Virus record (IMG/VR): IMGVR_UViG_3300038441_001119
Span: 1 to 64,000 of that record
DNA: 64,000 nucleotides
Reading direction: 5' to 3' (one strand)
Shown: positions 723 through 64,000 of the stretch, one piece after another
How the letters are laid out: the number at the start of each line of letters is the position of its first letter
Numbering within the stretch: position 1 is the first letter of the stretch
Translations under genes and position numbers: made by a program
The notes under the pieces: generated by a model
Told to the model about the DNA's origin: nothing
Seen by the model: the letters and a program-made list of their open reading frames with translations, nothing else
Database searches by the model: none

Positions 723-797
723 TGGAGTCGAATGTCAGGATTGAACTGACGACAGCTTGGTTGGAAGCCAAGTGCTCTACCTCTGAGCTAATTCGAC
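723..797 (-). tRNA. tRNA-Gly(UCC)
   Basis: Canonical cloverleaf: acceptor GTCGAAT/ATTCGAC, anticodon loop CT-TCC-AA, T-arm GTCAG-TTCAATC-CTGAC, encoded CCA. Confidence 0.93.
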
Positions 798-799
798 AT

Positions 800-871
800 T
801 GGTCGTAGGAGTTGGACTCGAACCAACACGTTCCGCTGATCAGGCAGACGCTCTACTTAAGCAATCCTACA
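800..871 (-). tRNA. Atypical tRNA-Ile(GAU)-like
   Basis: Acceptor TGTAGGA/TCCTACG plus ACCA, T-arm GTTGG-TTCGAGT-CCAAC, anticodon loop CT-GAT-CA; 5-nt D-loop without GG, C at position 37. Confidence 0.7.
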
Positions 872-875
872 AATT

Positions 876-1009
876 GAAATTTCGCTTGTCTTTCCAAGCT
901 GTCAAATCTGTTCCAACCTAGGGAACCACTCTCCTCGGCTTACGCCTGTCATGGATTCGAACCATGTCCTTCGCCAGATCTCGATTAGCGAGCGGGAATC
1001 GAACCCGCC
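876..1009 (-). ncRNA. Candidate structured ncRNA inside the tRNA operon, with two T-arm-like hairpins
   Basis: Hairpins GGCGGG-TTCGATT-CCCGCT, CATGG-TTCGAAT-CCATG, GGC-GTAA-GCC and GCTTG-GAAAGA-CAAGC; no ORF; lies between tRNA genes. Confidence 0.55.
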
Positions 1010-1022
1010 TGAATTTATAAAT

Positions 1023-1111
1023 TGGCAGGACGTGCTGGATTTTTACCAACATCCCCCGGCTTTCAACCGGTAGCACTCGCACCCTCATGGGTCTTTTATG
1101 CCTAACGTCCT
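1023..1111 (-). tRNA. Atypical tRNA-Phe(GAA)-like with expanded D-loop and non-canonical T-loop
   Basis: Acceptor AGGACGT/ACGTCCT plus GCCA; anticodon loop TT-GAA-AG; extra hairpin ACCC-ATGA-GGGT in the D-loop; T-loop TAAAAAT. Confidence 0.7.
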
Positions 1112-1118
1112 ATTTGAT

Positions 1119-1192
1119 TGGTTGCGGAAATGGGATTCGAACCCATGTGCAAGGCTTATGAGACCCTTGAGTGACCACTACTCTATTCCGCG
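1119..1192 (-). tRNA. tRNA-Met(CAU), probably initiator type
   Basis: Cloverleaf with CT-CAT-AA loop, C1-A72 mismatch typical of fMet tRNA, encoded CCA; only two G-C pairs next to the anticodon loop. Confidence 0.88.
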
Positions 1193-2370: not shown

Positions 2371-4698
2371 TCAGAGTGTGTTCAGGTAATTGTTGATACG
2401 GTCAATGTGGTCCGTGAGGTCTTCAAGGCTAAGAAGCACAGCGGTCACATCGCCAGACATAGGGTTGAGGAATCCAGCAGTGTGAACATACAAAGCACCA
2501 AGACATCCGAATCCAGTAAAAGCATCGACTGTCATCTCTCCAAGAAGAGTTCCGTTTTGGTAGGCGTTTGTCACACCACCCGACCGAATGATGTAGATGT
2601 TACTGGCAGTACTCCGCGCCACAATTCCAGCATACGCGTCAAAGGCGCCACCAATACCACTCACAATCTCACCATTTCCAGTGTTCCAAATACGTAGAAT
2701 CTGTTCATTGGTGATGGTTGGAATGGAGTAATCACTTGCGATAACGGAATCACCTGATGAAGTAAGCCGCACAACAAGAGTGAAGTCTCCGGTAAGGGGG
2801 ATCCTCGTGCTTGTCAGGGCGTCATCAATACCATCAAACCTGACCACAGGCTTGCCGCTCACAAACTTCAGGGTAGAGCGTTTGGTTTCAGTAGTCTGAC
2901 CAAAGATACGCTCCGAATCAGTAAGTTCATCGCTCCATCCTCCAACAGGTGAACCATCAACTGCGGAAGGCACTGTGCATTCGTCATCTTGATATAGACC
3001 TAATGGAACATTGTCACCATTGTGGGTCTGCAGGCGGAGAGCGAGGGGCAGATCGACAAGAGGATCGATAACCGCAAGGATATTGCTCCGCTTTCCATTG
3101 GAATCCCATACGCGCACTTCGTCATCCTCAGTCACTGACAAAGGAATGGTTGTATTGGTAGTAGTGAATGTCGCACCAACGTTGACACCATTGACAGTGA
3201 GTTGATATGGAGGAATACCACCTTGCACCACCAAATCTCCACCTGCAAAGGCTCCTTCTGGTGCATAGATGTAGACATCGCCCAGATACTTGTTTAGGAC
3301 GTAGTTACGAATATCTTCTACAATGACGGGATCAGCGTCATGCGGAACAAGCCATGCTCCAAAGAATCGAATTGCAGCATGCGCCTGACCATCGCCGCCT
3401 AAGTAACGACCGCCTATAGCATAATGGGTCACATTCAGATTCTGGTCCGCAGCTACAGTTCCAATCTCAGTATTGTCTCTCCACAAAGTTATGTCACCGC
3501 CAGATGGCTCAAAGAGCGCCTCAAAGACATGCTTGCCTTGATAACTCGTCGAATCACTGATCCGGAAGTTCCCTCCTTGGTGTGCTGCAATATTGGTTCC
3601 CCCATTATTGCGAATGAGCATGAAATGTCCACCGCTGTAGTCCTCGTATTCACTGCCGCTACCAAAGACACGTGCGTACTGCTGACCTCCATTACCGAGA
3701 ACCTGATAGGCCACAAAAAGTCTGGCTCCAGTAAAGGACGTGTTGTATGTACCTCTGAGCCAGTCATCGAATCCCTCGAAGATGGAGGAAGGGCGACGGA
3801 TGACAAGGGCTGGATTGTTGCCGCTTTTGTTGGCAGTTACTACCTGACCTGTGGAACAAGCGAATGATGTGGCATTGTCGATAACTGCTGTGTCAGTGAA
3901 ATCAGCATCGAGGCGTTTATCTGTGCCATTGAGGGAAGCGAAGACCTGCACATGTTGAGCTGCATAGCGTATAGGGCTGCCGGTACCGCGATCATACGTT
4001 CCAATCTCGAAGTTTTCATCCGAATCAAACAAATTAACACCCGGTTGAACCGTTGCAGCGGAGCCTACCTGCGTCCATGTCGTCCCGTCGATACTTTCAT
4101 AGAATTTCAATTCACCATCGCTAACCTGTCTGGTAACTCTGACCCATCCCGGAACTCCGTCTACTAGAGTAATGTCCGCGTCTGATGCATTGGCAGTAAT
4201 TCCACCAGAACCATCCGGGGACATGTAGAAAACAAGTTTCCTATTGTTGACTGCAAACACAAAGCAGTAGTTAGCTACATACCATTTCGAGAACAGAGCC
4301 ATATTGGCGGACGAGGTGTGCCAAGATGCAGGACAAAGCTTAACCCTGATGTCGATATCTCCTGTAATGGAGTCTTCTGTAAGATTAGGTATACTGAAAT
4401 AGTTCCCAGCTACGCCGGGAAGGTAGCCATATCCTCTATTCTCTGTCAAAGGCAGATAGATAGGTTGGCTACCGCTTGTAGGCTGCGTTGCATTGGATGC
4501 TGTACCTCTGTTGATCGTAGTGTTAATCAAATCAAAGATACCAGCAGATGTACCGCCTGTCTTCAGTACGCCGTAGTCCATCTCCAGCCTTACAATGGGC
4601 TGTATATGATCCCACACAGGACCATCGGAGTACCATTCGAGATACTGAGTCAGGTCCACACTTACAATCGGACCATGTACGCTTCTAGACAGAGACAT
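2371..4698 (-). CDS. Virion spike/fibre protein with LamG/concanavalin-like domains
   Basis: 775 aa, beta-rich, LamG-like motifs (FDGIDD, GDVTAVLL); shares the LRLQTHNGDNVPLGLYQD module with 48201-51455. Confidence 0.7.
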   Translation of the reverse strand: MSLSRSVHGPIVSVDLTQYLEWYSDGPVWDHIQPIVRLEMDYGVLKTGGTSAGIFDLINTTINRGTASNATQPTSGSQPIYLPLTENRGYGYLPGVAGNYFSIPNLTEDSITGDIDIRVKLCPASWHTSSANMALFSKWYVANYCFVFAVNNRKLVFYMSPDGSGGITANASDADITLVDGVPGWVRVTRQVSDGELKFYESIDGTTWTQVGSAATVQPGVNLFDSDENFEIGTYDRGTGSPIRYAAQHVQVFASLNGTDKRLDADFTDTAVIDNATSFACSTGQVVTANKSGNNPALVIRRPSSIFEGFDDWLRGTYNTSFTGARLFVAYQVLGNGGQQYARVFGSGSEYEDYSGGHFMLIRNNGGTNIAAHQGGNFRISDSTSYQGKHVFEALFEPSGGDITLWRDNTEIGTVAADQNLNVTHYAIGGRYLGGDGQAHAAIRFFGAWLVPHDADPVIVEDIRNYVLNKYLGDVYIYAPEGAFAGGDLVVQGGIPPYQLTVNGVNVGATFTTTNTTIPLSVTEDDEVRVWDSNGKRSNILAVIDPLVDLPLALRLQTHNGDNVPLGLYQDDECTVPSAVDGSPVGGWSDELTDSERIFGQTTETKRSTLKFVSGKPVVRFDGIDDALTSTRIPLTGDFTLVVRLTSSGDSVIASDYSIPTITNEQILRIWNTGNGEIVSGIGGAFDAYAGIVARSTASNIYIIRSGGVTNAYQNGTLLGEMTVDAFTGFGCLGALYVHTAGFLNPMSGDVTAVLLSLEDLTDHIDRINNYLNTL

Positions 4699-4720: not shown

Positions 4721-7700
4721 TTAGAATTTACCAGTCTGATTGATCTTTTCACCAAATCCGACACCGTATCCAAGTCTCGGAGCAAAGTGCTGGTTCTCAG
4801 CGAAGTTGGTCTCAGCCCCACGAACAGCACTGTCTGCCAGCTGTTGCGACAGATACGATGTACTCATGCTTGCAAGCCAGTCCTCGTTGGCATGTGAAGC
4901 AGTACGAAGCCTGTCCATACGTGCAGTGAACGGTGGTTTCTCCTCAGTAGCCTTGAAGTTGGTCACACCATTGTTCTTCAGGTCCTTCAGCATACTCTTG
5001 GTGATCCTTGTACCACTGGTGTGATGCAACACATCGCCTGCAAGATACCCTGAAGGGATTGCGTTGTCCGTGCTGACATCAATGATGCTCTTGGGTTTCC
5101 AAGCTCTTGAAGCCTTGTTGTAACTGATGCTGTCATCAGGCAGGTTATCAAGATCTTCCATCTCTTCATCCAGATTGACAGTGCTCAACGCTCCCTTGGC
5201 AAAGATCTCCAGATTTTTTTTATCTGCTGATAGTCCTGAATCCGCATAGATCTCCTTCAAGCGGTCAACATAGTATCTGCGTGCTTCACCAAGGCCCTTG
5301 TAGTTGACCACATCACGCACATCAACGATACCTTCGCTCAGTGCATCGCCTGCTTCCACTTCATCGCCCTGTTTGACAAGCACTGGATAGCCCTGAGGCA
5401 CATACAGCTCCTTCTCATTGACTTTGACGAAGTGTCCACCTTGCGGGGCTTCACGAACCTCTGTAACAATGCCATCTTCCTCAGCGACAGTGCTCTTGTG
5501 CTGGTACTCACTCGGGGACTGCACAAACTGAGACAGGATCTCGAAGCCACCATAGGTACGCTTCGCCTTACCTTGACCTGCAGTATGCTTCGCACTGTTA
5601 CTGACTATCATTCCATTAGCCAGCACGAACAAGTGATCAGGATTAGCCACCTCGATGTCCCAGCATTGCTTGTACATTGGAATGGTTGCACGCACAGCCT
5701 GAGTAAGACCATACATAGTGACAATCTTACTTGGGAATCCCTGTCCATCATTTCTGAGAGTCCTTGTGATGCGCTCACCAAGCTCAACTTGTTTGCCATC
5801 ATTGTAGACAATCTTCTCATTGAGGAACTTGTGGTTCGCAGTGCACTCCACAGAGAAACTCTTTCCATTCACATTGGCAAAGTCCCATGTTTGTACAGGC
5901 TGTTCCCCCTGATTGAACTTATCGGTAACCTCAACAGGTCCCGTTCTGCCCAACTTGTCTGAACCAAGCACAATGTCACCAATACGGATCTTCTCAATGG
6001 CTTTCTCACTGCCATCCCACATACGCACCATGGTTCCCTCCGCCAAGCAAAGAGCACCTTGGGTCACAGGCTCACTGTTGTGTGTGATGAGCAGTCCCTC
6101 TGTAACAAACAGATGTGATTCGTTGTCCACAGTAATGTCCCATGTAGGAAGATTGCCAGCAGGATTAACTTGCTTCAGAAACGCAATGTCACGAAGACTA
6201 CGAATGGCCTTCAGCTTACGCAGCATCTCATCCAATGCGAACTTCTTCACTCCAAGCATGTATGGCAACAGATATGATCCCAGTCTGAAGATACCATTGG
6301 TATTGCGAGTGCGGATATCCCATTCCTTCACACCTTTCCTGTTGTACTCAGTTTTGAACACACCCGGAATAAGCAGTCGGTTCTTGATGAGCCTGAACAC
6401 GTCGTCTGCAAGCTGTTCGCTGCTGTTGGTGAATTTGATCACCTCTCCCTCTTTACCAATGTAGCCATCAGTTACAATCAAGCCTGCAAGGAATGCACAC
6501 ACAGAAGAATGGTCCCAACGAGAGAACACTTCATCAGGGATATGTTTGTCCTTGCATCTGCTTCCCCACAGACCAAGCTCCGTAGCACGTGTCTTGAGGA
6601 AGTTCTTGTACACTCGTGCATTGGCCCCATTGTTGAGTATGGTGAATGTGCCTTGCTGTGCTTCCAATGCCTTGGGACCGCTCAGTTGCATTCCTTTCTC
6701 TTGGAGATAGTCATTCAACTGGCGAACAAGAATGGGATCATAGCAGGAGAACGTCGCTGAACCACCTGCATCAAACGTACCATCGCCCAGCATTGCTCCA
6801 AGGATGAATGCAAGGTTCTCATGTATGCTGTCTTGTGGTTCCCAATGAGTGGAAGCAACGGTGAGGCCCTTACGGAAACGTGCTCCTTGTTTGTTGATAG
6901 GGACATCCTTCAGTGTGGACTCTTCACTTGTGACCAGCTTGTTGCGGCAGTCGTAAACACTTGCGTGCCACCTGTGATTCTCTGTCGCGACTACCGTCGT
7001 CTCTTTTTCCTGCGAATAAGTCGTAAACACATATTTGTTGCACGATTGGTTGCCTCTATCGTGCACAGCAGTCACCTTCGTCGGGGAGAACGTATTGTTA
7101 TGGTTATATCCCACCACAGTATCCCCAACCTTGATCTCCTCAATGTTCTTCCAAGTACTATCACCCATCAGCACCTTTGTACCCTCTGCAAGACACAAGG
7201 CGTTGGCAGCAGTAATACCCACATGCTCCCCTATCTTGGGAAACCTATGCTCGAACGTCATACCCACACACTTGCTGCACAGACCATCAGCCTTACAACT
7301 CAACGGTGATCTGGCTATGACCTTCTCCACTCCTTGTTTCTTGAGAGCTGCCAATGCCTGTCTGTCCAGCAGAGTACCAGCCTTCATACCACCAGTATCC
7401 CTAGCAAGCACTCTATTACGTACAGTACTGTCATCCACCTCATAGGAGATACCATTGTTTGTATGGCAGTCCTTGTCAGTGATCACAAGGTTGGCTGCAG
7501 TCTGTGAAGCAAGCTTACCGAAGTCACCACCTTTGGCAGTTGCAACCTTGGTGGAGATAACGGATGAACGTGCACCATATGTACCAGCCATGTACTCATA
7601 GGGTCTCAGTCCTTCTGCAAATGAGTTCCTGATGAATACTGGGATAGTCTTACCATTGGCATCCTGATACACACCGGGAGTGGATAGCATAGCCTGTACC

Positions 7701-8137
7701 TGTACTGGCTTACCCCGTGATCCCGATGATACTGCCATACCCAGATTGTTGAACTGGGCTTTGGCTGCACTCATGGTGTCTTTGATGAGAAGATCATTGT
7801 ACTTGTACCAGATGGCTTCCCGCTGTCTGTTGAACTCATCTGGATCATTACGGAAGGTTTTCTTTGCTTCCTTGATCTCAGCATCCATTGCCTTGAAGAT
7901 TACTCCCTTGTCTATGACTGGTACGAGATCCTTCAGTCCGATGGATTCACCTTGTTTGTATGATGCTTCCCTGCCCACTGTTGCGATCTTGTGGGAGATG
8001 TCCTTGTACTTGTCCGGATGTTTCTGGTACAGGGTGACAAGCATATTGTTGATGGACTTGTCATCAAACCCTGTGAGTGAGTCTTTCACATCATCAGGGA
8101 GGAGGGAGCGGATAAGTAATTCTACAGCCTTGGCCAT
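4721..8137 (-). CDS. rpoC: Multisubunit RNA polymerase beta' subunit, C-terminal piece, with two inteins
   Basis: SGSRG, NSFAEGL, bridge helix YGARSSVISTKVATAKGG, Zn site C-x5-C-x2-C, spliced trigger helix GEHVGITAANALSEPVTQGALSAKHTAG; start moved to MAKAV (8137). Confidence 0.92.
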   Translation of the reverse strand: MAKAVELLIRSLLPDDVKDSLTGFDDKSINNMLVTLYQKHPDKYKDISHKIATVGREASYKQGESIGLKDLVPVIDKGVIFKAMDAEIKEAKKTFRNDPDEFNRQREAIWYKYNDLLIKDTMSAAKAQFNNLGMAVSSGSRGKPVQVQAMLSTPGVYQDANGKTIPVFIRNSFAEGLRPYEYMAGTYGARSSVISTKVATAKGGDFGKLASQTAANLVITDKDCHTNNGISYEVDDSTVRNRVLARDTGGMKAGTLLDRQALAALKKQGVEKVIARSPLSCKADGLCSKCVGMTFEHRFPKIGEHVGITAANALCLAEGTKVLMGDSTWKNIEEIKVGDTVVGYNHNNTFSPTKVTAVHDRGNQSCNKYVFTTYSQEKETTVVATENHRWHASVYDCRNKLVTSEESTLKDVPINKQGARFRKGLTVASTHWEPQDSIHENLAFILGAMLGDGTFDAGGSATFSCYDPILVRQLNDYLQEKGMQLSGPKALEAQQGTFTILNNGANARVYKNFLKTRATELGLWGSRCKDKHIPDEVFSRWDHSSVCAFLAGLIVTDGYIGKEGEVIKFTNSSEQLADDVFRLIKNRLLIPGVFKTEYNRKGVKEWDIRTRNTNGIFRLGSYLLPYMLGVKKFALDEMLRKLKAIRSLRDIAFLKQVNPAGNLPTWDITVDNESHLFVTEGLLITHNSEPVTQGALCLAEGTMVRMWDGSEKAIEKIRIGDIVLGSDKLGRTGPVEVTDKFNQGEQPVQTWDFANVNGKSFSVECTANHKFLNEKIVYNDGKQVELGERITRTLRNDGQGFPSKIVTMYGLTQAVRATIPMYKQCWDIEVANPDHLFVLANGMIVSNSAKHTAGQGKAKRTYGGFEILSQFVQSPSEYQHKSTVAEEDGIVTEVREAPQGGHFVKVNEKELYVPQGYPVLVKQGDEVEAGDALSEGIVDVRDVVNYKGLGEARRYYVDRLKEIYADSGLSADKKNLEIFAKGALSTVNLDEEMEDLDNLPDDSISYNKASRAWKPKSIIDVSTDNAIPSGYLAGDVLHHTSGTRITKSMLKDLKNNGVTNFKATEEKPPFTARMDRLRTASHANEDWLASMSTSYLSQQLADSAVRGAETNFAENQHFAPRLGYGVGFGEKINQTGKF
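5597..6049 (-). mobile_element. Mini-intein (151 aa, no endonuclease)
   Basis: Starts CLAEGT, block B ECTANHKF, ends WDIEV..HLFVLANGMIVSN followed by Ser+1. Confidence 0.9.
6077..7195 (-). mobile_element. Intein with LAGLIDADG homing endonuclease (373 aa)
   Basis: Starts CLAEGT, block B ATENHRW, motifs LGAMLGDG and LAGLIVTDG, ends HLFVTEGLLITHN followed by Ser+1. Confidence 0.93.
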
Positions 8138-30176: not shown

Positions 30177-30251
30177 TGGTAGGCCCGGCTGGATTCGAAC
30201 CAGCGACTCAAGGATTATGAGTCCTTTACTCTACCGCTGAGTTACAAGCCC
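30177..30251 (-). tRNA. tRNA with CAU anticodon, probably tRNA-Ile2 (lysidine type)
   Basis: Cloverleaf, GA-CTCATAA-TC anticodon arm, GTCGCTGGTTCGAATCCAGC 3' half typical of Ile2, paired 1:72, encoded CCA. Confidence 0.88.
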
Positions 30252-44263: not shown

Positions 44264-46408
44264 TCAAGAGACGAATTGGTCGAAGCCGCCTGAGAACCCG
44301 ATGTAGATCAGACGTGCCGAAGTCAGCGTAGAGATACTGACATTACTTCCATTGTTAACTCTGCAGGTGCCACTGCCTGTAACAGTCATCGTCTGAGTCG
44401 AGCTATTACGTACGATGAAATGTTGACCTACTTGCATGGTACCAAGGCTGTCTATAGTCAGAGTATGTCCGCCAGAGTTGTAGATACCGATGTATACCTT
44501 GCCTGCCGGATTGCCACCAGAGTAAGTGGAGATGTCGAGAGAAGCAGAGGAGGCCAGACCAACAATATCGTAAGGAAGAGTCTCCAAGTCCGTAATGTCA
44601 GCCATTACGTGAGTGTGCGTTCTGTCCGCTGCATCAAGGAAGATCCGAGCATCGTTGTCGTTCAACGCCACAAGGAAGTCCTCCATGAACGGCTCCACGT
44701 CGACAATATCCTCTACAGTAATAGTGTGGGTGTGCGATGTAGAGGGTACATCCAGAGCAGTACGCCATGCTGCTGCATTCGCCAACGAGGCAAGGGTACC
44801 AGAGAAATAGATGTCAACGCCAGTGATGGACGCTATAGCGTGAGTATGAGAAGTGGAAGCCGCGTCTAGGTAACTGCGTGCACTTGTTGCCGTAGTTGCA
44901 GTTGCCAAGTTAAGACCAAGAGTGGAGAAACCACTAGTGATATCACTGAGGCTATGCGTATGCGATGCTGCTGCAGCAGAGATCGTGGCGCGAGCTGAGG
45001 CTGCATCGACAGTTGCGAGTAGGGACGCACCAGTGACACCGGCATTGGAGATTTGACTGATCGTATGGGTGTGTACTGTAGAGGGTACACCAAGCGTGGT
45101 CCTGATTGCAGTAGCGTCTGCACCAGTGAGCACTGCTCTGCCAGTTGAACTGGAGTCACTGATATCAACAGCGGTAATGCCGAGAGCAGACTTGGCAGCA
45201 GACGCTGAAGTCGTGGCTAGCAGGGTACTACCAAAGGAGCCTTTATAGCTGGAGACGACCCATGTGGTGTCATACTGATCAATGTCATAAGTACCAGCAG
45301 GAAGGATCACCGATGCGCCCAGCGAGTTACCCGAGTCAGAGACTAGGGTCGCAGGCGATGTGACATTGACTGTGAAGGTGTAGCCAGTACCAACGAACAC
45401 GCTGATCTTACTATGCGTGTTCGTATAATTGGCGGGGTTGATGTTAACCGCACTCGAAACAGAATTGACGATATACTTCTTAGTACCAGAGCTGTTGATC
45501 AGGTTGAAGGAACCGGTATTAACAACCACCAGATCCATGGACCCCTGACTGGAGAGCGCATCAATGGCTGTGCGAGCATCGGCTGCGGAAGCTACGGCCA
45601 TCAGTGTTTTACCCAGCGCGGAAGTGTCGGTGATGTCGTTGATGACGTGCGTGTGGACTTCGTTGGCAGCATCAATCAGATCCCGAACCACCGAAGCAGA
45701 AGCAGCCCCAGCAATGCTGCGACCAAGAGAAGTCGTATCAGTGATGTCTGTGAGAACATGGACATGAGAGGCTGCCGCCGCAGCGATTGCTGCACGTGCG
45801 TTAAGTTGCGAAGAAGCACCCAACACGGCTCTGCCAATCGCAGTGGAGTCACTGATCTCAGAAGCGGTGTGCGTATGCGAAGAAGGCGCTCCGCCGATGA
45901 TGGTGAGCACTGAGCCTCCGGATGCTGCGGTCATGATCAGGCGACCAGTGGCGGTGGCATCGGACAGCTGGCTTACAGTATGGTTATGGGCATTACCCAT
46001 CAGGGACTGCAGCTTGTCCCAGCGAACCGTAAAGGTGCTCTCCCTAGCAGAAGGAATGACAATGGGAAGGCGAGAGTTAGCAGGGAGGCTATTACCCTTG
46101 AAAGGAGGAAGCGAGGAGAAGGGTATACCCCTGTCCGGACCTTCCGTTACGATCTCGGCGTCTTCACTACCAGCCAACCACGACAACACGTAGTCATCGG
46201 TATCAGGAGGGGTAATCAGATCCACAGTGAAACCTGTTTCTGATCTAGAGGTAACAACAGCTTCAAGCCAAAGCTGCGATTCAGCCTCCGCAGCATTGTA
46301 AACATCCGTATGGATCAGCTGTGGAGGAGCCGTGAATGCAGAAGGATAGGAGACCTCATAAGAGACCTCACCAGTTACCAAAGAAAGTAGACCTTGTTGA
46401 AGCGCCAT
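44264..46408 (-). CDS. Long tail fibre with nine H-x-H repeats
   Basis: Roughly 37-aa Ala/Ser/Thr repeats each containing HTH/HNH/HVH...(I/L)(S/T)D. Confidence 0.85.
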   Translation of the reverse strand: MALQQGLLSLVTGEVSYEVSYPSAFTAPPQLIHTDVYNAAEAESQLWLEAVVTSRSETGFTVDLITPPDTDDYVLSWLAGSEDAEIVTEGPDRGIPFSSLPPFKGNSLPANSRLPIVIPSARESTFTVRWDKLQSLMGNAHNHTVSQLSDATATGRLIMTAASGGSVLTIIGGAPSSHTHTASEISDSTAIGRAVLGASSQLNARAAIAAAAASHVHVLTDITDTTSLGRSIAGAASASVVRDLIDAANEVHTHVINDITDTSALGKTLMAVASAADARTAIDALSSQGSMDLVVVNTGSFNLINSSGTKKYIVNSVSSAVNINPANYTNTHSKISVFVGTGYTFTVNVTSPATLVSDSGNSLGASVILPAGTYDIDQYDTTWVVSSYKGSFGSTLLATTSASAAKSALGITAVDISDSSSTGRAVLTGADATAIRTTLGVPSTVHTHTISQISNAGVTGASLLATVDAASARATISAAAASHTHSLSDITSGFSTLGLNLATATTATSARSYLDAASTSHTHAIASITGVDIYFSGTLASLANAAAWRTALDVPSTSHTHTITVEDIVDVEPFMEDFLVALNDNDARIFLDAADRTHTHVMADITDLETLPYDIVGLASSASLDISTYSGGNPAGKVYIGIYNSGGHTLTIDSLGTMQVGQHFIVRNSSTQTMTVTGSGTCRVNNGSNVSISTLTSARLIYIGFSGGFDQFVS

Positions 46409-48200: not shown

Positions 48201-51200
48201 TTAACCCCTCAGGTCATTCAAGTAGTCCATCAGATGTGCGTCAATGGTATCAAGAGATGCCGCTACTGCGTAAACATCTCCTTTGAAGAACCTGCTGGAG
48301 GTACCATCTATGTAACCGCCCACAGAGCTACCCATAGTCGGAGTGTTGAATGTACCGGCTCTGGAGTAGCGGGGAACCAGGTCGTTAACGTATACATAGG
48401 CTTGGCTACTACCATTCTTCATAGCAATAACCCCTCCGTCCTCTAGATTCACCGTAGTGGACATCCACTCCAGTGCATCATGTATACAGACACCGTAGGA
48501 GCCGGGAACATCAAACGAACTTCCTGCAGCACCGGAGCCAATAGACCAGCCAGTACCCAGCCCTCCATTACTGAAGGCAGAGCCTCCGGAATCGCTGTCA
48601 GGTCTGCAGACCACATAGGTCGTCAAATCTGTAGAGTTATCAGCGAGCGTAGTATTGGAGATAAGGATCTTTCTGGTACCTCCGGGGAAATTAACCACAG
48701 GAACACCGTAACGGAACCTAAGTGTTGGGCGCTGAGATGAATCCGGAGCTGTATACACTAGGCCAGATGAGGTCAATACGTCTTTCCACACGTAGATAGG
48801 ATCTCCATCTTCCATTGCTGGAATGGTCATAGCAGCGTCTTGATAGAGACCTAATGGGACATTGTCGCCATTGTGAGTCTGCAGACGAAGCTGATACGAT
48901 GGAGGCGGTCTAAGGGAGTGGGAGTGCTGCGCTACTTTCTGCAGATCTGCGAATGATAGGTATGCAGTACCTGCGAAGTACCCCGTTCCTTTATGCGTAG
49001 AAATGGAATATCCCGCTCCTCCGCTAATATCCGTACCATGCACAGCAAGTTCCAGATTACCAAGTGAAGCAGAGAAGGGAGAACTTAGTGTACCTGTGGT
49101 TTCGATATTGGACGTGGGGGTAATGGTGACCTGCCTAACGCTAGTTCCATTCCACGTCACGGCTACCGTATTCCATTTATTAGCAGTTACAGCTTGCGCG
49201 TTAACCGGACCGGTCACACCGATGTGCCCAAGGCCATAGATATTAGTAGTATTATCGCGACATAGGGCGGCTCCCCCGCTGCTGACTCCAAGCAATGTAC
49301 CATAGGGCGCGGTTTCTTCGGCAAGGAATGTGGCCACCAAGAAACCTGATGAGTTGATGCTGGTGGCTGGGAGGTCTGTAACCATACGAACTGTACCCCC
49401 GGTCATTGCTAGCACCGGAGTACCGTTGATGTAGTCAACTGATGGGCGTTTACCTGCGTCGGTCTGCGTTCCAACACCATCAATACCGCTCCAAGTATGT
49501 ACAAGATCCCCATCAGCAACTGCAGGAGTCTCACCTGAGTCTTTCCTCATTTTATACGGGAAAGGCGTTCTATCTCCCAAATGCGATTGAAGTCTGAGAC
49601 TAAAATCAATATCTACGATAGGGTCCACCGGAATCTGCGATCCAAGGTAATTACGAATGACTGTACGGTCGCCGTCCAGAGTATCCGATGCGCGGCTGAC
49701 GAAGATTACTTCTCGCACAGTACCGGACCATGTGGAGGGGCGGGAGTCTCCTATAACAGGATCCTCTCCTAAGGCAAACGTATTGTCACCAGTGGCGTGA
49801 AGTAACGTACTGTTCAACCAAGCTTTCCAATAACCATTCTTACTGGAGACTTCATATATGTACCAGTCCGACAGGACGGTGGAGGGGTTGCCAACAACCT
49901 TCCTTACATTACTGGCAAAATCATCATAGATTATCCCGTCCAGATATGGCATATGGCCACCATATTCCGCACCATTTCCTACATCACCAATTAGACCTCC
50001 ATCGCCGGTTCCGATCACTGGTGGATCAAGGTTGTTCTTTGCCAAGACAAATACGGACAGCTCTGAATATCCTTCTCCTTCAAAGGTTGGTAAATGGAGG
50101 CGGTCGCCAACTCCATCAAATCTTACACCAGTTTCATACAACGTCGGTGCAGAACCTACAGTATCAGATGTACCGGCACCGGCAAGTGTTCCACGGTTAG
50201 GCCACGACATGACAGACGCTCCGATACCGTCAAGGTCAGTATAGCGATATCGTGCGACAACGTCTGGCACGTTGACAATAGGATCCGTGTAGTTGTGGAA
50301 CGATCTGAGGTCCACAACTTCAGGAAGATAGTACGTAGCAATACCTGCGGCTGCGTCTACAGCTGAGATGATAGCTTCCCAGTCACGATTGTAGTAGTAG
50401 GGACCTCTGTGAGGGTAGTACCAATGACTCAGCAATACCAGCTCTCCATTTACAGGGATTACAGAGGGACCTCCAGAATCTCCCGCAACAGGATAGCGGA
50501 AGAAGGGGGACAGATTGTCTCCGGACAAGGTTCCATATGTAGCACTGGTAATGGAATCATCTAGATACTCCAGAGTATAAACAGCTGCCTCTCCAAATTG
50601 ATTCCTACCAAACGTATGAACGCCCCACTCGGTCTTCCTGAGGTAGTCACCAAGGTTGTCAGGCGGAATCAGTAGAGGCTTGATGACAGATGGTAAATCC
50701 TCGTTGAGTGCGGCTATGGCAATGTCAGTTCCCGGAACGAAGTAGGTTGCCAAGACTGTTCTATCGTAGACATCATCATCAGCACTTACAAACCTTACAG
50801 TGCTGCCTGTAGGGAATGGATTGCCGTAGTGGACTGCTCCGACAATATGCCGAGGGGTAATGAGATTGGCAGCCGATGTTTGACCCCACACGGAGTTCCA
50901 CACTGCCATACCTGACATACCGGCTGCAAAATCAGCACACCACACATCAGTATTACGGACATAGGACGCCTCCGTATGGGCAGCGGAAGAAAATATCTTC
51001 CACGTAGTCGGACTGACTGTTAGCCCTTCGGTTCTACCATCGATTTCGTCAAAGATATGCTTTGCGAGGGATCCGTCAGCCCACCTCGAAAAGGTATATG
51101 TTTCCGCAGGATCCAGTAGCTCTACATTGACCGTGAACTTCTGGGTCCTTGGTCCTGTGTAAGCCATAATCTCCGCTGCACCATCAGATACATACGTGAT

Positions 51201-51455
51201 ATTTCCTTCCGCGTCCACTGTGGCAATGGAAGGATCCAGACTGGCGAAGGTACCGTTGTTACCGAACCCCCTAGGTACGAGAACGCCTTCCTTATAGTAG
51301 GAAGCACCTTCATGCGCCCAGAGAACAGCGTCCTCTTGTACCTCTTCAGTAGTACTACCGGGGTCTGCAATGCGTTGGGTGTACTGCAAAGCGTACCCAT
51401 CATTGGGCAGCTTGCCTACAAGATAATGCGAACTAGAGCTGTCACCGACAATCAT
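48201..51455 (-). CDS. Multidomain spike/fibre: Ig-like domain, trypsin-like serine protease, LamG-like modules
   Basis: SLDPSIATVDAEG (Ig-like), LITPRHIVGAVH / TDIAI / GDSGGP triad, LamG-like repeats. Confidence 0.8.
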   Translation of the reverse strand: MIVGDSSSSHYLVGKLPNDGYALQYTQRIADPGSTTEEVQEDAVLWAHEGASYYKEGVLVPRGFGNNGTFASLDPSIATVDAEGNITYVSDGAAEIMAYTGPRTQKFTVNVELLDPAETYTFSRWADGSLAKHIFDEIDGRTEGLTVSPTTWKIFSSAAHTEASYVRNTDVWCADFAAGMSGMAVWNSVWGQTSAANLITPRHIVGAVHYGNPFPTGSTVRFVSADDDVYDRTVLATYFVPGTDIAIAALNEDLPSVIKPLLIPPDNLGDYLRKTEWGVHTFGRNQFGEAAVYTLEYLDDSITSATYGTLSGDNLSPFFRYPVAGDSGGPSVIPVNGELVLLSHWYYPHRGPYYYNRDWEAIISAVDAAAGIATYYLPEVVDLRSFHNYTDPIVNVPDVVARYRYTDLDGIGASVMSWPNRGTLAGAGTSDTVGSAPTLYETGVRFDGVGDRLHLPTFEGEGYSELSVFVLAKNNLDPPVIGTGDGGLIGDVGNGAEYGGHMPYLDGIIYDDFASNVRKVVGNPSTVLSDWYIYEVSSKNGYWKAWLNSTLLHATGDNTFALGEDPVIGDSRPSTWSGTVREVIFVSRASDTLDGDRTVIRNYLGSQIPVDPIVDIDFSLRLQSHLGDRTPFPYKMRKDSGETPAVADGDLVHTWSGIDGVGTQTDAGKRPSVDYINGTPVLAMTGGTVRMVTDLPATSINSSGFLVATFLAEETAPYGTLLGVSSGGAALCRDNTTNIYGLGHIGVTGPVNAQAVTANKWNTVAVTWNGTSVRQVTITPTSNIETTGTLSSPFSASLGNLELAVHGTDISGGAGYSISTHKGTGYFAGTAYLSFADLQKVAQHSHSLRPPPSYQLRLQTHNGDNVPLGLYQDAAMTIPAMEDGDPIYVWKDVLTSSGLVYTAPDSSQRPTLRFRYGVPVVNFPGGTRKILISNTTLADNSTDLTTYVVCRPDSDSGGSAFSNGGLGTGWSIGSGAAGSSFDVPGSYGVCIHDALEWMSTTVNLEDGGVIAMKNGSSQAYVYVNDLVPRYSRAGTFNTPTMGSSVGGYIDGTSSRFFKGDVYAVAASLDTIDAHLMDYLNDLRG

Positions 51456-59283: not shown

Positions 59284-59535
59284 TTACTTCTTAACCACCT
59301 TGGAGAGAGTCCCTTCGCCATCATCTTTATATTCTTGTAGAGGGACGAACTCGACCTTGGGAAAAAGCTTCTTGTAATTCTTAGCTTCAGGAGTCTTATC
59401 CGTGAAGGTGCAGGTCTGTTGACCATCTTGGAAAAAGACAATACCGACCTTACCATCCATATCCACCAGTTCAATGAAACGAAACTCGGGAGGCAGTTGG
59501 ATGTAATCGCCGTTTGTCTTTCTTAGTCTGATCAA
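59284..59535 (-). CDS. Hypothetical protein
   Basis: 83 aa; ATGA overlap. Confidence 0.7.
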   Translation of the reverse strand: MIRLRKTNGDYIQLPPEFRFIELVDMDGKVGIVFFQDGQQTCTFTDKTPEAKNYKKLFPKVEFVPLQEYKDDGEGTLSKVVKK

Positions 59536-60071
59536 AATGCCTGCATTTGTTGATTCATCTCCTGATCCTTAAGGAAGGACTGAACCACACGGGTTACTTG
59601 TTCGAAGTCCTGCTCAAGAGCTTCAATGCGAGCTTGCAACTCTTGGTTGCCCTCTTCCTTCTCTTGCTGCAGTTGATCGAATCCTGCCTTAAGCTCTTCT
59701 ATATGTCCAGAGATTTCCTCAACTGCTTGTGCCACTTCTTGAATCACCTGTACGAGCTGTGCGAGATCTTCTTCGCTGACCCCTGAGACCATAGGATCGC
59801 CACCGCCCTGTGGGGGAGGCCCTGCAGGAGCGCCCTGAGGAGGAGCACCTCCCATCATAGCAGGGTCCATGGGTTGTCCAGTGGCTGGATCAATTGGCAT
59901 GCCTGTAGCAGGATCCACTGGAGGACCACCAGCAGGAGCACCCTGAGGAGGAGCGCCTCCCGGGGGCATGCCGCCACCCGGAGGAACCATGGGCTGGAAT
60001 GCCTTCTTGACAATCAATTCCTTCAGTTCCTTCATGGCGCTGATGCTATCTTCAATTTGTTTCCTATCCAT
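59532..60071 (-). CDS. Pro/Gly/Met-rich low-complexity plus coiled-coil protein (possible scaffold or virion protein)
   Basis: GGAPPQGAPAG twice, DPATG twice, acidic coiled-coil C-terminus. Confidence 0.8.
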   Translation of the reverse strand: MDRKQIEDSISAMKELKELIVKKAFQPMVPPGGGMPPGGAPPQGAPAGGPPVDPATGMPIDPATGQPMDPAMMGGAPPQGAPAGPPPQGGGDPMVSGVSEEDLAQLVQVIQEVAQAVEEISGHIEELKAGFDQLQQEKEEGNQELQARIEALEQDFEQVTRVVQSFLKDQEMNQQMQAF

Positions 60072-60623: not shown

Positions 60624-61844
60624 TTATACCGGATTATTGCCTATTTGAGGACCTTGTACTGGAGCAGGGACTGGCATACCTCCCATAGGAGCAGGAGGCA
60701 TCATAGGAGGAGGTCCGATCTCAACGTTATCCGACAGTCTTACCTTCTTGTCTCTGATGGCTTGCATAGCTGTAGCCTCGTCAGGGAAGTAGTGGGTCTC
60801 CTTGGCAGGACGTTGGTGCGCGGAGTACAGCCCAAGGATCTGCTCGTGCTTCAGTGCGGGAACAATCTTGTCAGCTTCCTTGATGGAGTAAACCATCTTG
60901 GAAGGCATAAGGATGTCCTTGGCCTCATCCACAGACTCCTTCATGGAAGGAACGTGGATGTTCAGAGTATCACCGTCGTGGTCAAGGTTAAGGCCAGTGG
61001 ACACATATGGATTGGTAGCAACGTTGTCTCCGTCGATTAGTTTTGGCCATCCTGCAAGGACGTTGTACTTGTGCCACGCTGGAGCGCGAGAGTAGATAAC
61101 AGGACGCTCAGTTACTTCCCGGTCCAGTGCTTTCTTGGCGAAGTCCGTACGCTTGGAAACGTGCTCAAGGGCAGACAGGGAACTCATACCTGACTGCACA
61201 AGGCGGCGTTGGATATATGGGCCGTACACCTTCCATGCCATGTCAATAGGGATACCGATCTGATCCATGTCGAGATCTGGATTAGCGGTAGCAACGCCAC
61301 GTCCGACAGAGTCCATTGTCTTGGAGAATAGACGGCGATGAAATATAGAGTGCTTGGGACCAGCTCCTTTTCCAATGAGATGGTCCAGGAAGCCGCTGAC
61401 ACCGCGTTGTTTTGTCTTAGGGTTGACGGCCTCGCCATACCCATAAACAGCTTTAGCAGCGTTGTAGAGTTGGTATGCAGCATCTTTGGAGCCTTCTTCT
61501 CCAACCTCACCCTTGAGATCATTGTAGACTCCCTTGTAGTTGATCAGGTCCTTGTACAGCTCGTTTGCGTCACCGGGCATGAAGGTGTCGCCTGTGATGG
61601 AGAACGGTCTGAAGACAGGGGGAATGACTGGTACCTTGGAGATGGTCAGGTCAGCAGGCGCAATCTCATTCTTGCGCAAACCCGCAATGACGTTGAGGAT
61701 CTTGACGGCAGGTCCGCGCTTGGTCTTCTTGCCTGTAGCCAGATCATCCCTAGCTTGTTTCTCCAGAGCGTCAATGTCGACTTCCTGCAATGCCTTGTAG
61801 ATGGCCATTGGTCCGGTTCCATAACGTCTTTCTTCCTGCTGCAT
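60624..61844 (-). CDS. rpoC: Multisubunit RNA polymerase beta' subunit, catalytic (N-proximal) piece
   Basis: VPVIPPVFRP, RRLFSKTMDSVGRGV, SRAPAWH, catalytic NLDHDGD (60969-60989; NADFDGD equivalent). Confidence 0.92.
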   Translation of the reverse strand: MQQEERRYGTGPMAIYKALQEVDIDALEKQARDDLATGKKTKRGPAVKILNVIAGLRKNEIAPADLTISKVPVIPPVFRPFSITGDTFMPGDANELYKDLINYKGVYNDLKGEVGEEGSKDAAYQLYNAAKAVYGYGEAVNPKTKQRGVSGFLDHLIGKGAGPKHSIFHRRLFSKTMDSVGRGVATANPDLDMDQIGIPIDMAWKVYGPYIQRRLVQSGMSSLSALEHVSKRTDFAKKALDREVTERPVIYSRAPAWHKYNVLAGWPKLIDGDNVATNPYVSTGLNLDHDGDTLNIHVPSMKESVDEAKDILMPSKMVYSIKEADKIVPALKHEQILGLYSAHQRPAKETHYFPDEATAMQAIRDKKVRLSDNVEIGPPPMMPPAPMGGMPVPAPVQGPQIGNNPV

Positions 61845-61882
61845 TCCTTGTATTGTAATGCATACAGGGTTCTATTACATAA

Positions 61883-61915
61883 AAAAATAGCGCCCCTTTT
61901 GAGGGCGCTATTTTT
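61883..61915 (-). terminator. Intrinsic terminator
   Basis: 13-bp stem AAAAATAGCGCCC/GGGCGCTATTTTT. Confidence 0.8.
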
Positions 61916-63847: not shown

Positions 63848-64000
63848 TTATTTCTTGATAGTCTTGTTGGAGGTAACGGCCTTGGTGACGAGCTTGGCCA
63901 ACGCAAGAATCGAGGCAGGGGCAAGGGTCTGGCATTCCACCTTGACGGTACCGTCCGAGGCGACGACAGCCACGTAATCGCCAAGCTTCATGGTTGCCGC
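63848..64000 (-). CDS. Hypothetical protein, 3' part only (window edge)
   Basis: Open frame ...MKLGDYVAVVASDGTVKVECQTLAP...IKK-stop. Confidence 0.5.
   Translation of the reverse strand, partial: AATMKLGDYVAVVASDGTVKVECQTLAPASILALAKLVTKAVTSNKTIKK

Follow-up and report, generated by a model that had tools for sequence, protein, structure and literature searches.

The stretch analysed here (the window) comprises bases 1–64,000 of the virus record IMGVR_UViG_3300038441_001119, a single 212,352-bp contig from a soil metagenome (JGI 3300038441). An open reading frame (ORF) at 60624–61844 on the minus strand encodes a protein with the catalytic loop of the beta' subunit of a multisubunit RNA polymerase (RNAP), and the bridge helix and trigger loop of the same subunit are encoded by a second gene at 4721–8137. 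The completeness of the genome according to CheckV is 100%. Its ends (1–140 and 212213–212352) overlap by approximately 140 bp with at least one mismatch, and IMG/VR classifies it as linear; the overlap is consistent with a complete genome that was either circularly assembled or is terminally repeated. The minus strand carries nearly all genes. The gene at 60624–61844 is very likely the active-center module of the sole multisubunit RNAP of this complete 212-kb phage, a bacterial-type enzyme divided among five genes. These genes are listed below; coordinates here and in the following refer to the genome and, up to position 64,000, equally to the window.

116147–117595, minus strand: beta1, 482 amino acids (aa), aligns to approximately residues 57–196 of E. 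coli beta
115374–116147, minus strand: beta2, 257 aa, Rpb2_3 domain, residues 425–580 of E. coli beta
81642–83561, minus strand: beta3::beta'1 (P0001), 639 aa, Rpb2_6 domain (E-value 1e-54) followed by the N-terminal part of beta'
60624–61844, minus strand: beta'2, the gene flagged by the initial annotation, 406 aa, approximately residues 181–565 of E. coli beta'
4721–8137, minus strand: beta'3, 1138 codons, residue 597 to the C-terminal part of E. coli beta'

Apart from the N-terminal zinc ribbon of beta', the five pieces tile beta and beta' without a gap. They are spread over 112 kb, and as all five genes lie on the minus strand, they are therefore arranged in rpoB-to-rpoC order along the direction of transcription. 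The initial annotation had described the catalytic piece and the bridge-helix/trigger-loop piece as separate genes, which is borne out by both ORFs, their matches to beta' domains and the 52.5 kb that lie between them. A search of the whole genome for beta and the remaining beta' fragments located beta1, beta2 and beta3::beta'1. Each RNAP module is single-copy, with one match each for phrog_25354, PF00562, PF04565 and phrog_2987, and no intact beta' gene, of which the two pieces might have been degenerate copies, was found elsewhere in the 212,352 bp. No homologue of alpha or omega was found in the genome. A 619-aa ORF beside beta3 (83568–85427) was considered as the N-terminus of beta and rejected: it has no similarity to gp206 of Salmonella phage Arash or to any solved chain and produces only a sub-threshold GNAT match; the true beta1 and beta2 are located at 115–118 kb. 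The phage collection searched contained no near-identical phage.

The frame of beta'2 is open for 406 aa. Its product matches the Pfam domain RNA_pol_Rpb1_2 with 61.9 bits (cut-off 25.3) and more than 100 solved beta' chains of the PDB (best E-value 2.3e-37). Residues 11–341 align to residues 181–512 of E. coli beta', and the alignment pairs GTGPMAI with GMGAEAV, YSRAPAWH with LNRAPTLH, and GLNLDHDGDTLNIHVP with AYNADFDGDQMAIHVP. It agrees with the initial annotation, which had placed the starting segment TGPMAIYKAL on the GAEAI segment of beta' and had recognized two replaced motifs. The Asp-x-Asp-x-Asp magnesium loop of the double-psi beta-barrel (Rpb1 domain 2) is present, and the metal-binding triad of NLDHDGD is presumably functional.

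60969–60989, minus strand: NLDHDGD, magnesium-binding loop (canonical NADFDGD), read from the sequence; no family member deviates at the three Asp or at the Gly
61071–61088, minus strand: RAPAWH, in place of the canonical RAPTLH; the whole family shares its W and H

The C-terminal tail of beta'2 (60624–60720, minus strand) is rich in Pro, Gly and Met (PPPMMPPAPMGGMPVPAP...) and relatives are without it. A long stretch of similar composition (PPGGGMPPGGAPPQGAPAGG...) occurs in the second ORF downstream (59532–60071, minus strand).

A word-based protein search yielded at least 324 homologues at E-values of 1e-10 or below, which have the boundaries of beta'2 in common. Most of them comprise 373–400 aa, are 50–71% identical and lie on contigs of up to 225 kb. 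In an alignment of 30 family members, all proteins begin at the same point (...PLTGPAAI...), and residues D288, D290, G291, D292, W257 and H258 are invariant; RAP[AS]WH is common to the whole family. In the phylogenetic tree, the family forms one clade (SH-aLRT 99) that is the sister of Arash and Vibrio phage D69 (SH-aLRT 98), a placement to be read with caution because the branches are long. The protein studied here falls into a subclade of seven (SH-aLRT 91), none of which has NADFDGD: the motifs are NLDHDGD (two members), NADHDGD, GGDHDGD, GGDYDGD and SGDFDGD (two members). The initial annotation had pointed out NLDHDGD and had deduced a distinct lineage. The motif does not define this lineage, as 19 of the 30 aligned proteins contain the canonical motif and the variants are confined to this one subclade. 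Judged from the alignment, the variant is a local relaxation of non-ligand positions and not a signature of the lineage.

The frame of beta'3 reaches 8197, and the likely ATG is at 8137, where the initial annotation had let the gene begin. The protein matches Rpb1 domains 4 and 5 and the beta' hybrid domain in Pfam, and holds the bridge helix, the trigger loop (GITAANAL/SEPVTQGAL/SAKH) and the clamp's C-terminal portion. The earlier description as one piece of beta' is correct with respect to these domains, but two inteins inside the gene had been overlooked. Exteins and inteins were searched separately, and the gene is composed as follows.

7196–8137, minus strand: N-extein, residues 597–922 of E. 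coli beta'; the cysteines of the second zinc site are kept (DKDC; SC...C..C)
6077–7195, minus strand: intein 1, 373 aa, from CLAEGT... to ...ITHN, then Ser; LAGLIDADG homing endonuclease with two LAGLIDADG motifs
6050–6076, minus strand: middle extein SEPVTQGAL, nine residues, tip of the first trigger helix
5597–6049, minus strand: intein 2, a mini-intein of 151 aa, from CLAEGT... to ...IVSN, then Ser
4724–5596, minus strand: C-extein, starts SAKHTAG with the trigger-loop His; approximately residues 1248–1382 of beta' from T. aquaticus/T. thermophilus, 1187–1284 of E. coli

The insertion point of intein 1 corresponds to I923/G924 of E. coli and that of intein 2 to M932/R933; intein 2 thereby lies in the first trigger helix and beside the catalytic His (SAKH). 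The two inteins occupy 524 of the 1138 codons, and the predicted spliced product has 614 aa. Both look intact, with the splicing residues Cys1, TxxH, terminal Asn and +1 Ser reading C...TENH...THN/S in intein 1 and C...TANH...VSN/S in intein 2. The Pfam matches in beta'3 include Hom_end_hint (E-value 1e-14), Hint (9e-9) and LAGLIDADG_3 (2.5e-10). Intein 1 resembles PI-SceI (E-value 4e-5), and for intein 2 the PDB contains no sequence match; over their first 76 residues, the two are 37% identical. A tblastn search with both inteins found no other intein-like sequence in the genome. Intein-free alleles of beta'3 exist in two relatives, G003 (614 aa) and G001 (617 aa), and that of G003 reads ...AAHALSEPLTQGALNVKH... 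without interruption. Inteins are known from other RNAPs, namely Mja rPol A', Mja rPol A'', Nph rPol A'' and eukaryotic RPB2, RPA2 and RPC2 (PMC1635734). Like those of beta'3, they are lodged in the most conserved active-site segments of the large subunits; in contrast to them, beta'3 contains two inteins at a distance of nine residues in one trigger loop of a phage enzyme. Literature searches on inteins of phage RNAPs or of trigger loops yielded nothing relevant, and no phage RNAP with inteins at this site was found described.

The initial annotation had postulated at least three fragments of beta', with the N-terminal zinc-binding region encoded elsewhere. A third fragment does exist; it is, however, fused to beta3 and is not a free gene, and it contains no zinc-binding cysteines. 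The seemingly missing N-terminal part of beta' is the last ~100 residues of P0001, which bridges the boundary of the subunits covalently. Residues 7–633 of P0001 are colinear with residues 483–1110 of Arash gp206 (32% identity, E-value 2e-93). According to Pfam, this 1525-aa protein contains Rpb2 domains up to residue 934, Rpb1_1 at 1022–1260 and Rpb1_2 at 1363–1456, and beta'2 aligns to approximately residues 1147–1511, the stretch after the part that matches P0001. A phmmer search of the PDB with the tail of P0001 alone found the C-terminal part of beta and no beta'. A profile of seven tails was needed to recognize beta'; all of its 39 PDB matches are N-termini of largest subunits (residues ~9–58, E-value ~1e-3), 38 of them from bacterial beta' or gamma and one from RPA190 of Pol I. 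In relative G007, the frame continues uninterrupted from the tail into beta'2 (...RGDKALEGYGKGSEALYKAL...), and the tail is also fused to beta'2 in G003, G011 and G012. Therefore, nothing is missing between beta'1 and beta'2. An N-terminal Cys4 zinc ribbon was not found: P0001 and six homologues have 8–11 residues and no Cys between GGLFD and WGKI. In the absence of cysteines at the site of the ribbon, it follows that no N-terminal zinc-binding region is encoded anywhere.

The assembly of beta'1 and beta'2 was modelled as a complex of beta'2 with residues 500–639 of P0001. The ipSAE score was 0.73, compared to 0.00 for the best of three controls; this mark is reached by 51 of 78 solved complexes and by 2 of 108 mismatched pairs. 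Between runs, the agreement in contacts is at least 61%, and the pLDDT of the partner is at least 50. In the modelled interface, residues 579–634 of P0001 face the VPVIPPVFRP segment of beta'2. The model supports a binding of beta'1 to beta'2. As many RNAPs have been solved, the score indicates a likeness to an intrachain contact and is not a proof of binding.

Two elements precede beta'2, and a gene for a sigma-70-like protein is located elsewhere in the genome.

61881–61910, minus strand: intrinsic-terminator-like hairpin with an 8-bp G+C-rich stem and T7, between the stop of the upstream gene (61915) and beta'2
61850–61880, minus strand: promoter-like ATGTAA-N17-TACAAT, ends 7 nucleotides before the ATG of beta'2
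172535–173311, minus strand: sigma-70-like gene, 258 aa; phrog_351 (E-value 1.3e-10), Sigma70_r3 (1.5e-4), weak r2 match

The hairpin was read directly from the sequence; the consensus scan did not list it. The extended form of the promoter-like element, TGTAATAG-N13/14-TACAATACAAG, occurs exactly twice in the 212 kb, each time 6–8 nucleotides before a start codon. Its second copy (173317–173344, minus strand) precedes the sigma-like gene at a distance of 6 nucleotides from the start codon. The element resembles a sigma70-type −35/−10 pair with a spacer of 16–17 nucleotides. Being unique to beta'2 and the sigma-like gene, it suggests that both are co-regulated, putatively from sigma70-like promoters that would give rise to nearly leaderless mRNAs. 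A common promoter word was not found, as k-mer counts on 77 upstream gaps gave T-runs only, and a scan with the sigma70 consensus remained at chance level.

All RNAP modules are present in 13 of 13 long relatives (G001–G013). The architecture of the genes varies greatly among these relatives. Four of them (G001, G004, G006 and G008) possess a beta3::beta'1 gene of ~640 aa as in this genome; in G003, G007, G011 and G012, there is the onward fusion to beta'2 described above. Inteins interrupt beta3 at two sites and also beta2; within 14 residues of the trigger loop, they occur at no fewer than four points. If circular permutation is allowed, 11 of 14 genomes keep the order from rpoB to rpoC, which is broken in G004/G008 and in G007. 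The ordered pieces lie up to 50 kb apart, as if an ancestral gene had been pulled apart by insertions.

In G007 (IMGVR_UViG_3300045988_180738), beta'3 is fractured into three ORFs on the minus strand (locus L070, 4130–4939 and 585–1421; locus L071, 759–2987). The first ends in the N-part of an intein. The second starts with the C-part of an intein and ends in the N-part of a second one. The third, at a distance of 22 kb, consists of an intein C-part, five extein residues, a complete LAGLIDADG intein and the C-extein. Between the first two lies a 610-aa ORF with an endonuclease-like IEFNGTYWH motif. The fragment ends look like two natural split inteins. Some relatives contain an insert of ~520 aa right after the catalytic DxDGD, which starts with Cys or Ser, ends with ...VQD and is followed by Thr (loci L027, L028 and L029, ~277 codons after locus base 3001; L032 and L037). 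The frame of G009 and G011 ends 13 codons past DGD (...DGDCQWGHVFVC...). This insert could be an atypical intein, a lineage-specific insertion or a further cut.

Most of what is known about multisubunit RNAPs of phages stems from phiKZ- and AR9-like phages, and the strong divergence of their enzymes hampers the comparison with cellular RNAP. These enzymes are likewise phage-encoded, with split beta and beta' and without alpha or omega (PMC7598289, PMC7824862). However, phiKZ and AR9 possess two enzyme sets, no sigma factor and no beta::beta' fusion, and their RNAPs are far more diverged from the cellular one, whereas the genome studied here contains one set, a sigma-like gene, the beta3::beta'1 fusion and another cutting pattern. 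Of the parallel to phiKZ and AR9 drawn by the initial annotation, the notion of a distinct phage RNAP lineage can be retained; beyond that, it is an analogy only.

The nearest cultured relatives of the RNAP are Arash gp206 and gp216 (PMC10585845) and the 1527-aa homologue of Vibrio phage D69, with ~32–33% identity. As in this phage, beta is fused to the N-terminal part of beta', there is no zinc ribbon, a gene for a sigma factor exists, and the cut between the catalytic and the bridge-helix part is at the same place as that between beta'2 and beta'3. In Arash, beta and the N-terminal half of beta' form one 1525-aa protein, the counterpart of which is distributed here over four genes and 57 kb. 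The Arash motif is AADYDGD instead of NLDHDGD, and the two inteins of beta'3 further set this phage apart. In both Arash and D69, the beta::beta'N fusion of 1525–1527 aa adjoins the portal gene. A homologue of the Arash portal gp204 is encoded at 107194–108963 (E-value 4e-29, residues 24–578 of 579); the portal is the one virion gene that was compared. Rhizobium phage RHph_Y65 and Vibrio phage 1.031.O possess unsplit beta' genes of 1127 and 1263 aa, respectively.

The mReC phages, a group of uncultured Caudoviricetes (Weinheimer and Aylward 2020, PMC7481178), resemble the present lineage in that their beta and beta' are recognized by cellular profiles. Unlike in this phage, their beta and beta' are mostly of full length, and they have a capsid of the Gp23 type (PF07068) and Terminase_6N. 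For PF07068 and PF03237 (Terminase_6N), no match with an E-value of 1 or below was found in the whole genome. A contig that shares with G005 both the metagenome of origin and the 1056-aa beta gene is given there among those not clustering with mReC (PMC7481178, Supplementary Data 2, sheet 2). In cyanobacteria and plastids (rpoC1/rpoC2), the boundary between gamma and beta' lies within a few tens of residues of that between beta'2 and beta'3: cyanobacterial beta' ~21–41 aligns to beta'3 ~31–49, and gamma 185–544 (of ~625) to beta'2 7–363. In contrast to this phage, the cyanobacterial genes are adjacent, contain no further cuts, are not fused to beta and keep the zinc ribbon. Natural rpoB-rpoC fusions exist in Helicobacter and Wolbachia, where full-length beta is joined to full-length beta'. 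The C-terminus of beta and the N-terminus of beta' are joined in the same way here, but the junction alone forms one protein of 639 aa. In summary, phage multisubunit RNAPs and RNAP inteins are each already known; the architecture of the present enzyme was not found described in a literature search.

According to the proposed mechanism, the five polypeptides would assemble non-covalently into one core, in which contacts that are intrachain in a common beta' are made in trans and the beta-beta' junction is held covalently by P0001. The non-covalent association follows from the fact that no fragment end contains an intein half and no other copy of an intein exists in the genome. Both inteins would have to splice out before the trigger loop, and hence the full catalytic rate, is restored; as the trigger loop requires their removal, the enzyme would be active only after protein splicing. 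The sigma-like protein would direct the enzyme to sigma70-like promoters. The scaffolding role of alpha and omega might be replaced by the beta-beta' fusion, or alpha and omega might be borrowed from the host.

Several observations weigh against this interpretation. The Ala-to-Leu and Phe-to-His changes of NLDHDGD adjoin the catalytic aspartates and may have an effect; furthermore, the trigger-loop Arg (E. coli R933) is replaced by Ser in beta'3. The match of the beta'1-tail profile to solved beta' chains is, taken alone, weak (E-value ~1e-3). The complex score, which refers to the one interface modelled, may in part be owed to solved RNAPs that the model had learned. As an alternative role, the sigma-like protein could turn the polymerase of the host to other promoters. 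A search of sequencing runs for this sequence found soil DNA runs only and no RNA run, and expression, splicing, assembly and activity of the enzyme are predictions from sequence and one model.

Other explanations account less well for the data. If the pieces belonged to an RNAP of the phiKZ/AR9 type, one would expect two paralogous enzymes, a virion and a non-virion one, both sigma-independent and highly diverged. The size of the genome (>200 kb), the splitting of beta and beta', the lack of encoded alpha and omega, and weak matches to phage-RNAP PHROGs (phrog_2987, E-value 1e-6; phrog_3015, 4e-12) fit such an assignment. Yet each module is present in one copy, beta and beta' are fused and cut differently, and the match to bacterial beta' (E-value 1e-37) is far stronger than those to phrog_2987 and phrog_3015. 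Moreover, this genome has a sigma-like gene, while a sigma factor is lacking from group 1 jumbo phages (PMC7824862), and the portal is homologous to that of Arash. This origin is thus highly improbable. The same must be said of the assumption that the phage once captured a bacterial rpoBC operon, the decaying remains of which no longer form an enzyme, with the variant motif as a sign of decay. Their scattering over 112 kb, the non-canonical catalytic loop, the lost zinc ribbon and the replaced R933 would be in line with decay; however, all frames are open, the five modules recur in every one of the 13 long relatives, the fragment ends are conserved, and the catalytic residues are invariant in a family of more than 300 homologues. 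In addition, the inteins keep every splicing residue, as one would expect only for a host protein that is required.

A covalent joining of the fragments by trans-splicing split inteins is suggested by G007, where the three ORFs of beta'3 end in intein halves, so that pieces of RNAP seem to be trans-spliced within the lineage. In the present genome, it is most unlikely: no fragment end contains an intein half, beta'2 starts with MQQEERRYGTGP and ends in a Pro-rich segment, beta'3 starts with MAKAVELL, P0001 ends with ...RNRKHR, and tblastn detects no further intein-like sequence. More weight, albeit still little, has to be given to a hybrid enzyme, in which the phage pieces would sit on host alpha2 and omega or would replace parts of the host enzyme. 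The genome encodes neither alpha nor omega, and the enzyme is bacterial-type and not highly diverged. On the other hand, phiKZ/AR9-type enzymes work without alpha or omega (Sokolova et al. 2020, PMC7598289), and with ~30% identity to any bacterial beta', the conservation of alpha-docking surfaces is uncertain. Moreover, the spectra of Arash virions are dominated by the fusion protein and beta', and host alpha is not mentioned (PMC10585845). Such a hybrid is therefore considered unlikely, and an RNAP assembled from the five phage-encoded chains remains the preferred explanation.

With respect to the virion, purified Arash particles are informative: gp206 yielded the most spectra of any protein (3516), gp216 yielded 1210, and the sigma factor gp10 was found (PMC10585845). 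In total, 116 of 272 Arash proteins were detected in the particles, and the authors allow for carry-over (PMC10585845). By analogy, the enzyme of this phage might be carried in the virion, which the initial annotation had considered probable but which can be proposed only tentatively; the estimate is based on the proteomics of a relative with ~32% identity.

A more far-reaching scenario combines these observations. A fused rpoB-rpoC-like ancestor might have been shattered, largely by homing elements, with its order kept, and reassembly might be achieved by non-covalent association, by cis-splicing as in this phage, or by trans-splicing as in G007; the RNAP and its sigma factor would be contained in the virion. 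Taken as a whole, this scenario is speculative and rather doubtful.

Additional features of the genome concern translation, replication and presumably structural proteins. ARAGORN identified tRNA-like genes with four-base anticodons (ccta, gaaa and tttg) at 65697–65775, 71124–71199 and 71214–71291 on the minus strand. Ordinary tRNAs for Gly, Ile and Met (two) are located in the window (723–1192 and 30177–30251), and those for Gln and Arg outside it. The gene at 130975–134322 (minus strand) encodes a family A DNA polymerase with an N-terminal domain of the uracil-DNA-glycosylase superfamily (residues 95–202). Between beta'2 and beta'3, two structural-looking proteins are encoded on the minus strand, one of 714 aa with matches to head fibres, tail fibres and phage-tail repeats (44264–46408) and one of 1084 aa with Ig-like domains (48201–51455).

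The lineage is abundant in metagenomes, as indicated by the more than 300 homologues, and its RNAP can still be aligned with ease to bacterial beta and beta'. It tolerates unusual cuts, a fusion at the subunit boundary, the loss of the zinc ribbon, changes beside the catalytic Asp and inteins in the trigger loop, features that ordinary RNAPs do not show. The lineage is thus a map of the positions at which an RNAP of bacterial type can be divided and put together again. beta'3 presents a case of a polymerase activity that would wait on protein splicing, and its relatives offer candidate natural split inteins. With Arash, a cultured relative is available that makes virion carriage and rifampicin independence directly testable. 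If RNAP and sigma factor are indeed carried in the virion, early transcription would be independent of the host in phages that are not phiKZ-like. If the ancestral gene was indeed shattered as outlined above, this soil and aquatic lineage would represent a natural experiment in the breaking up of an essential enzyme.

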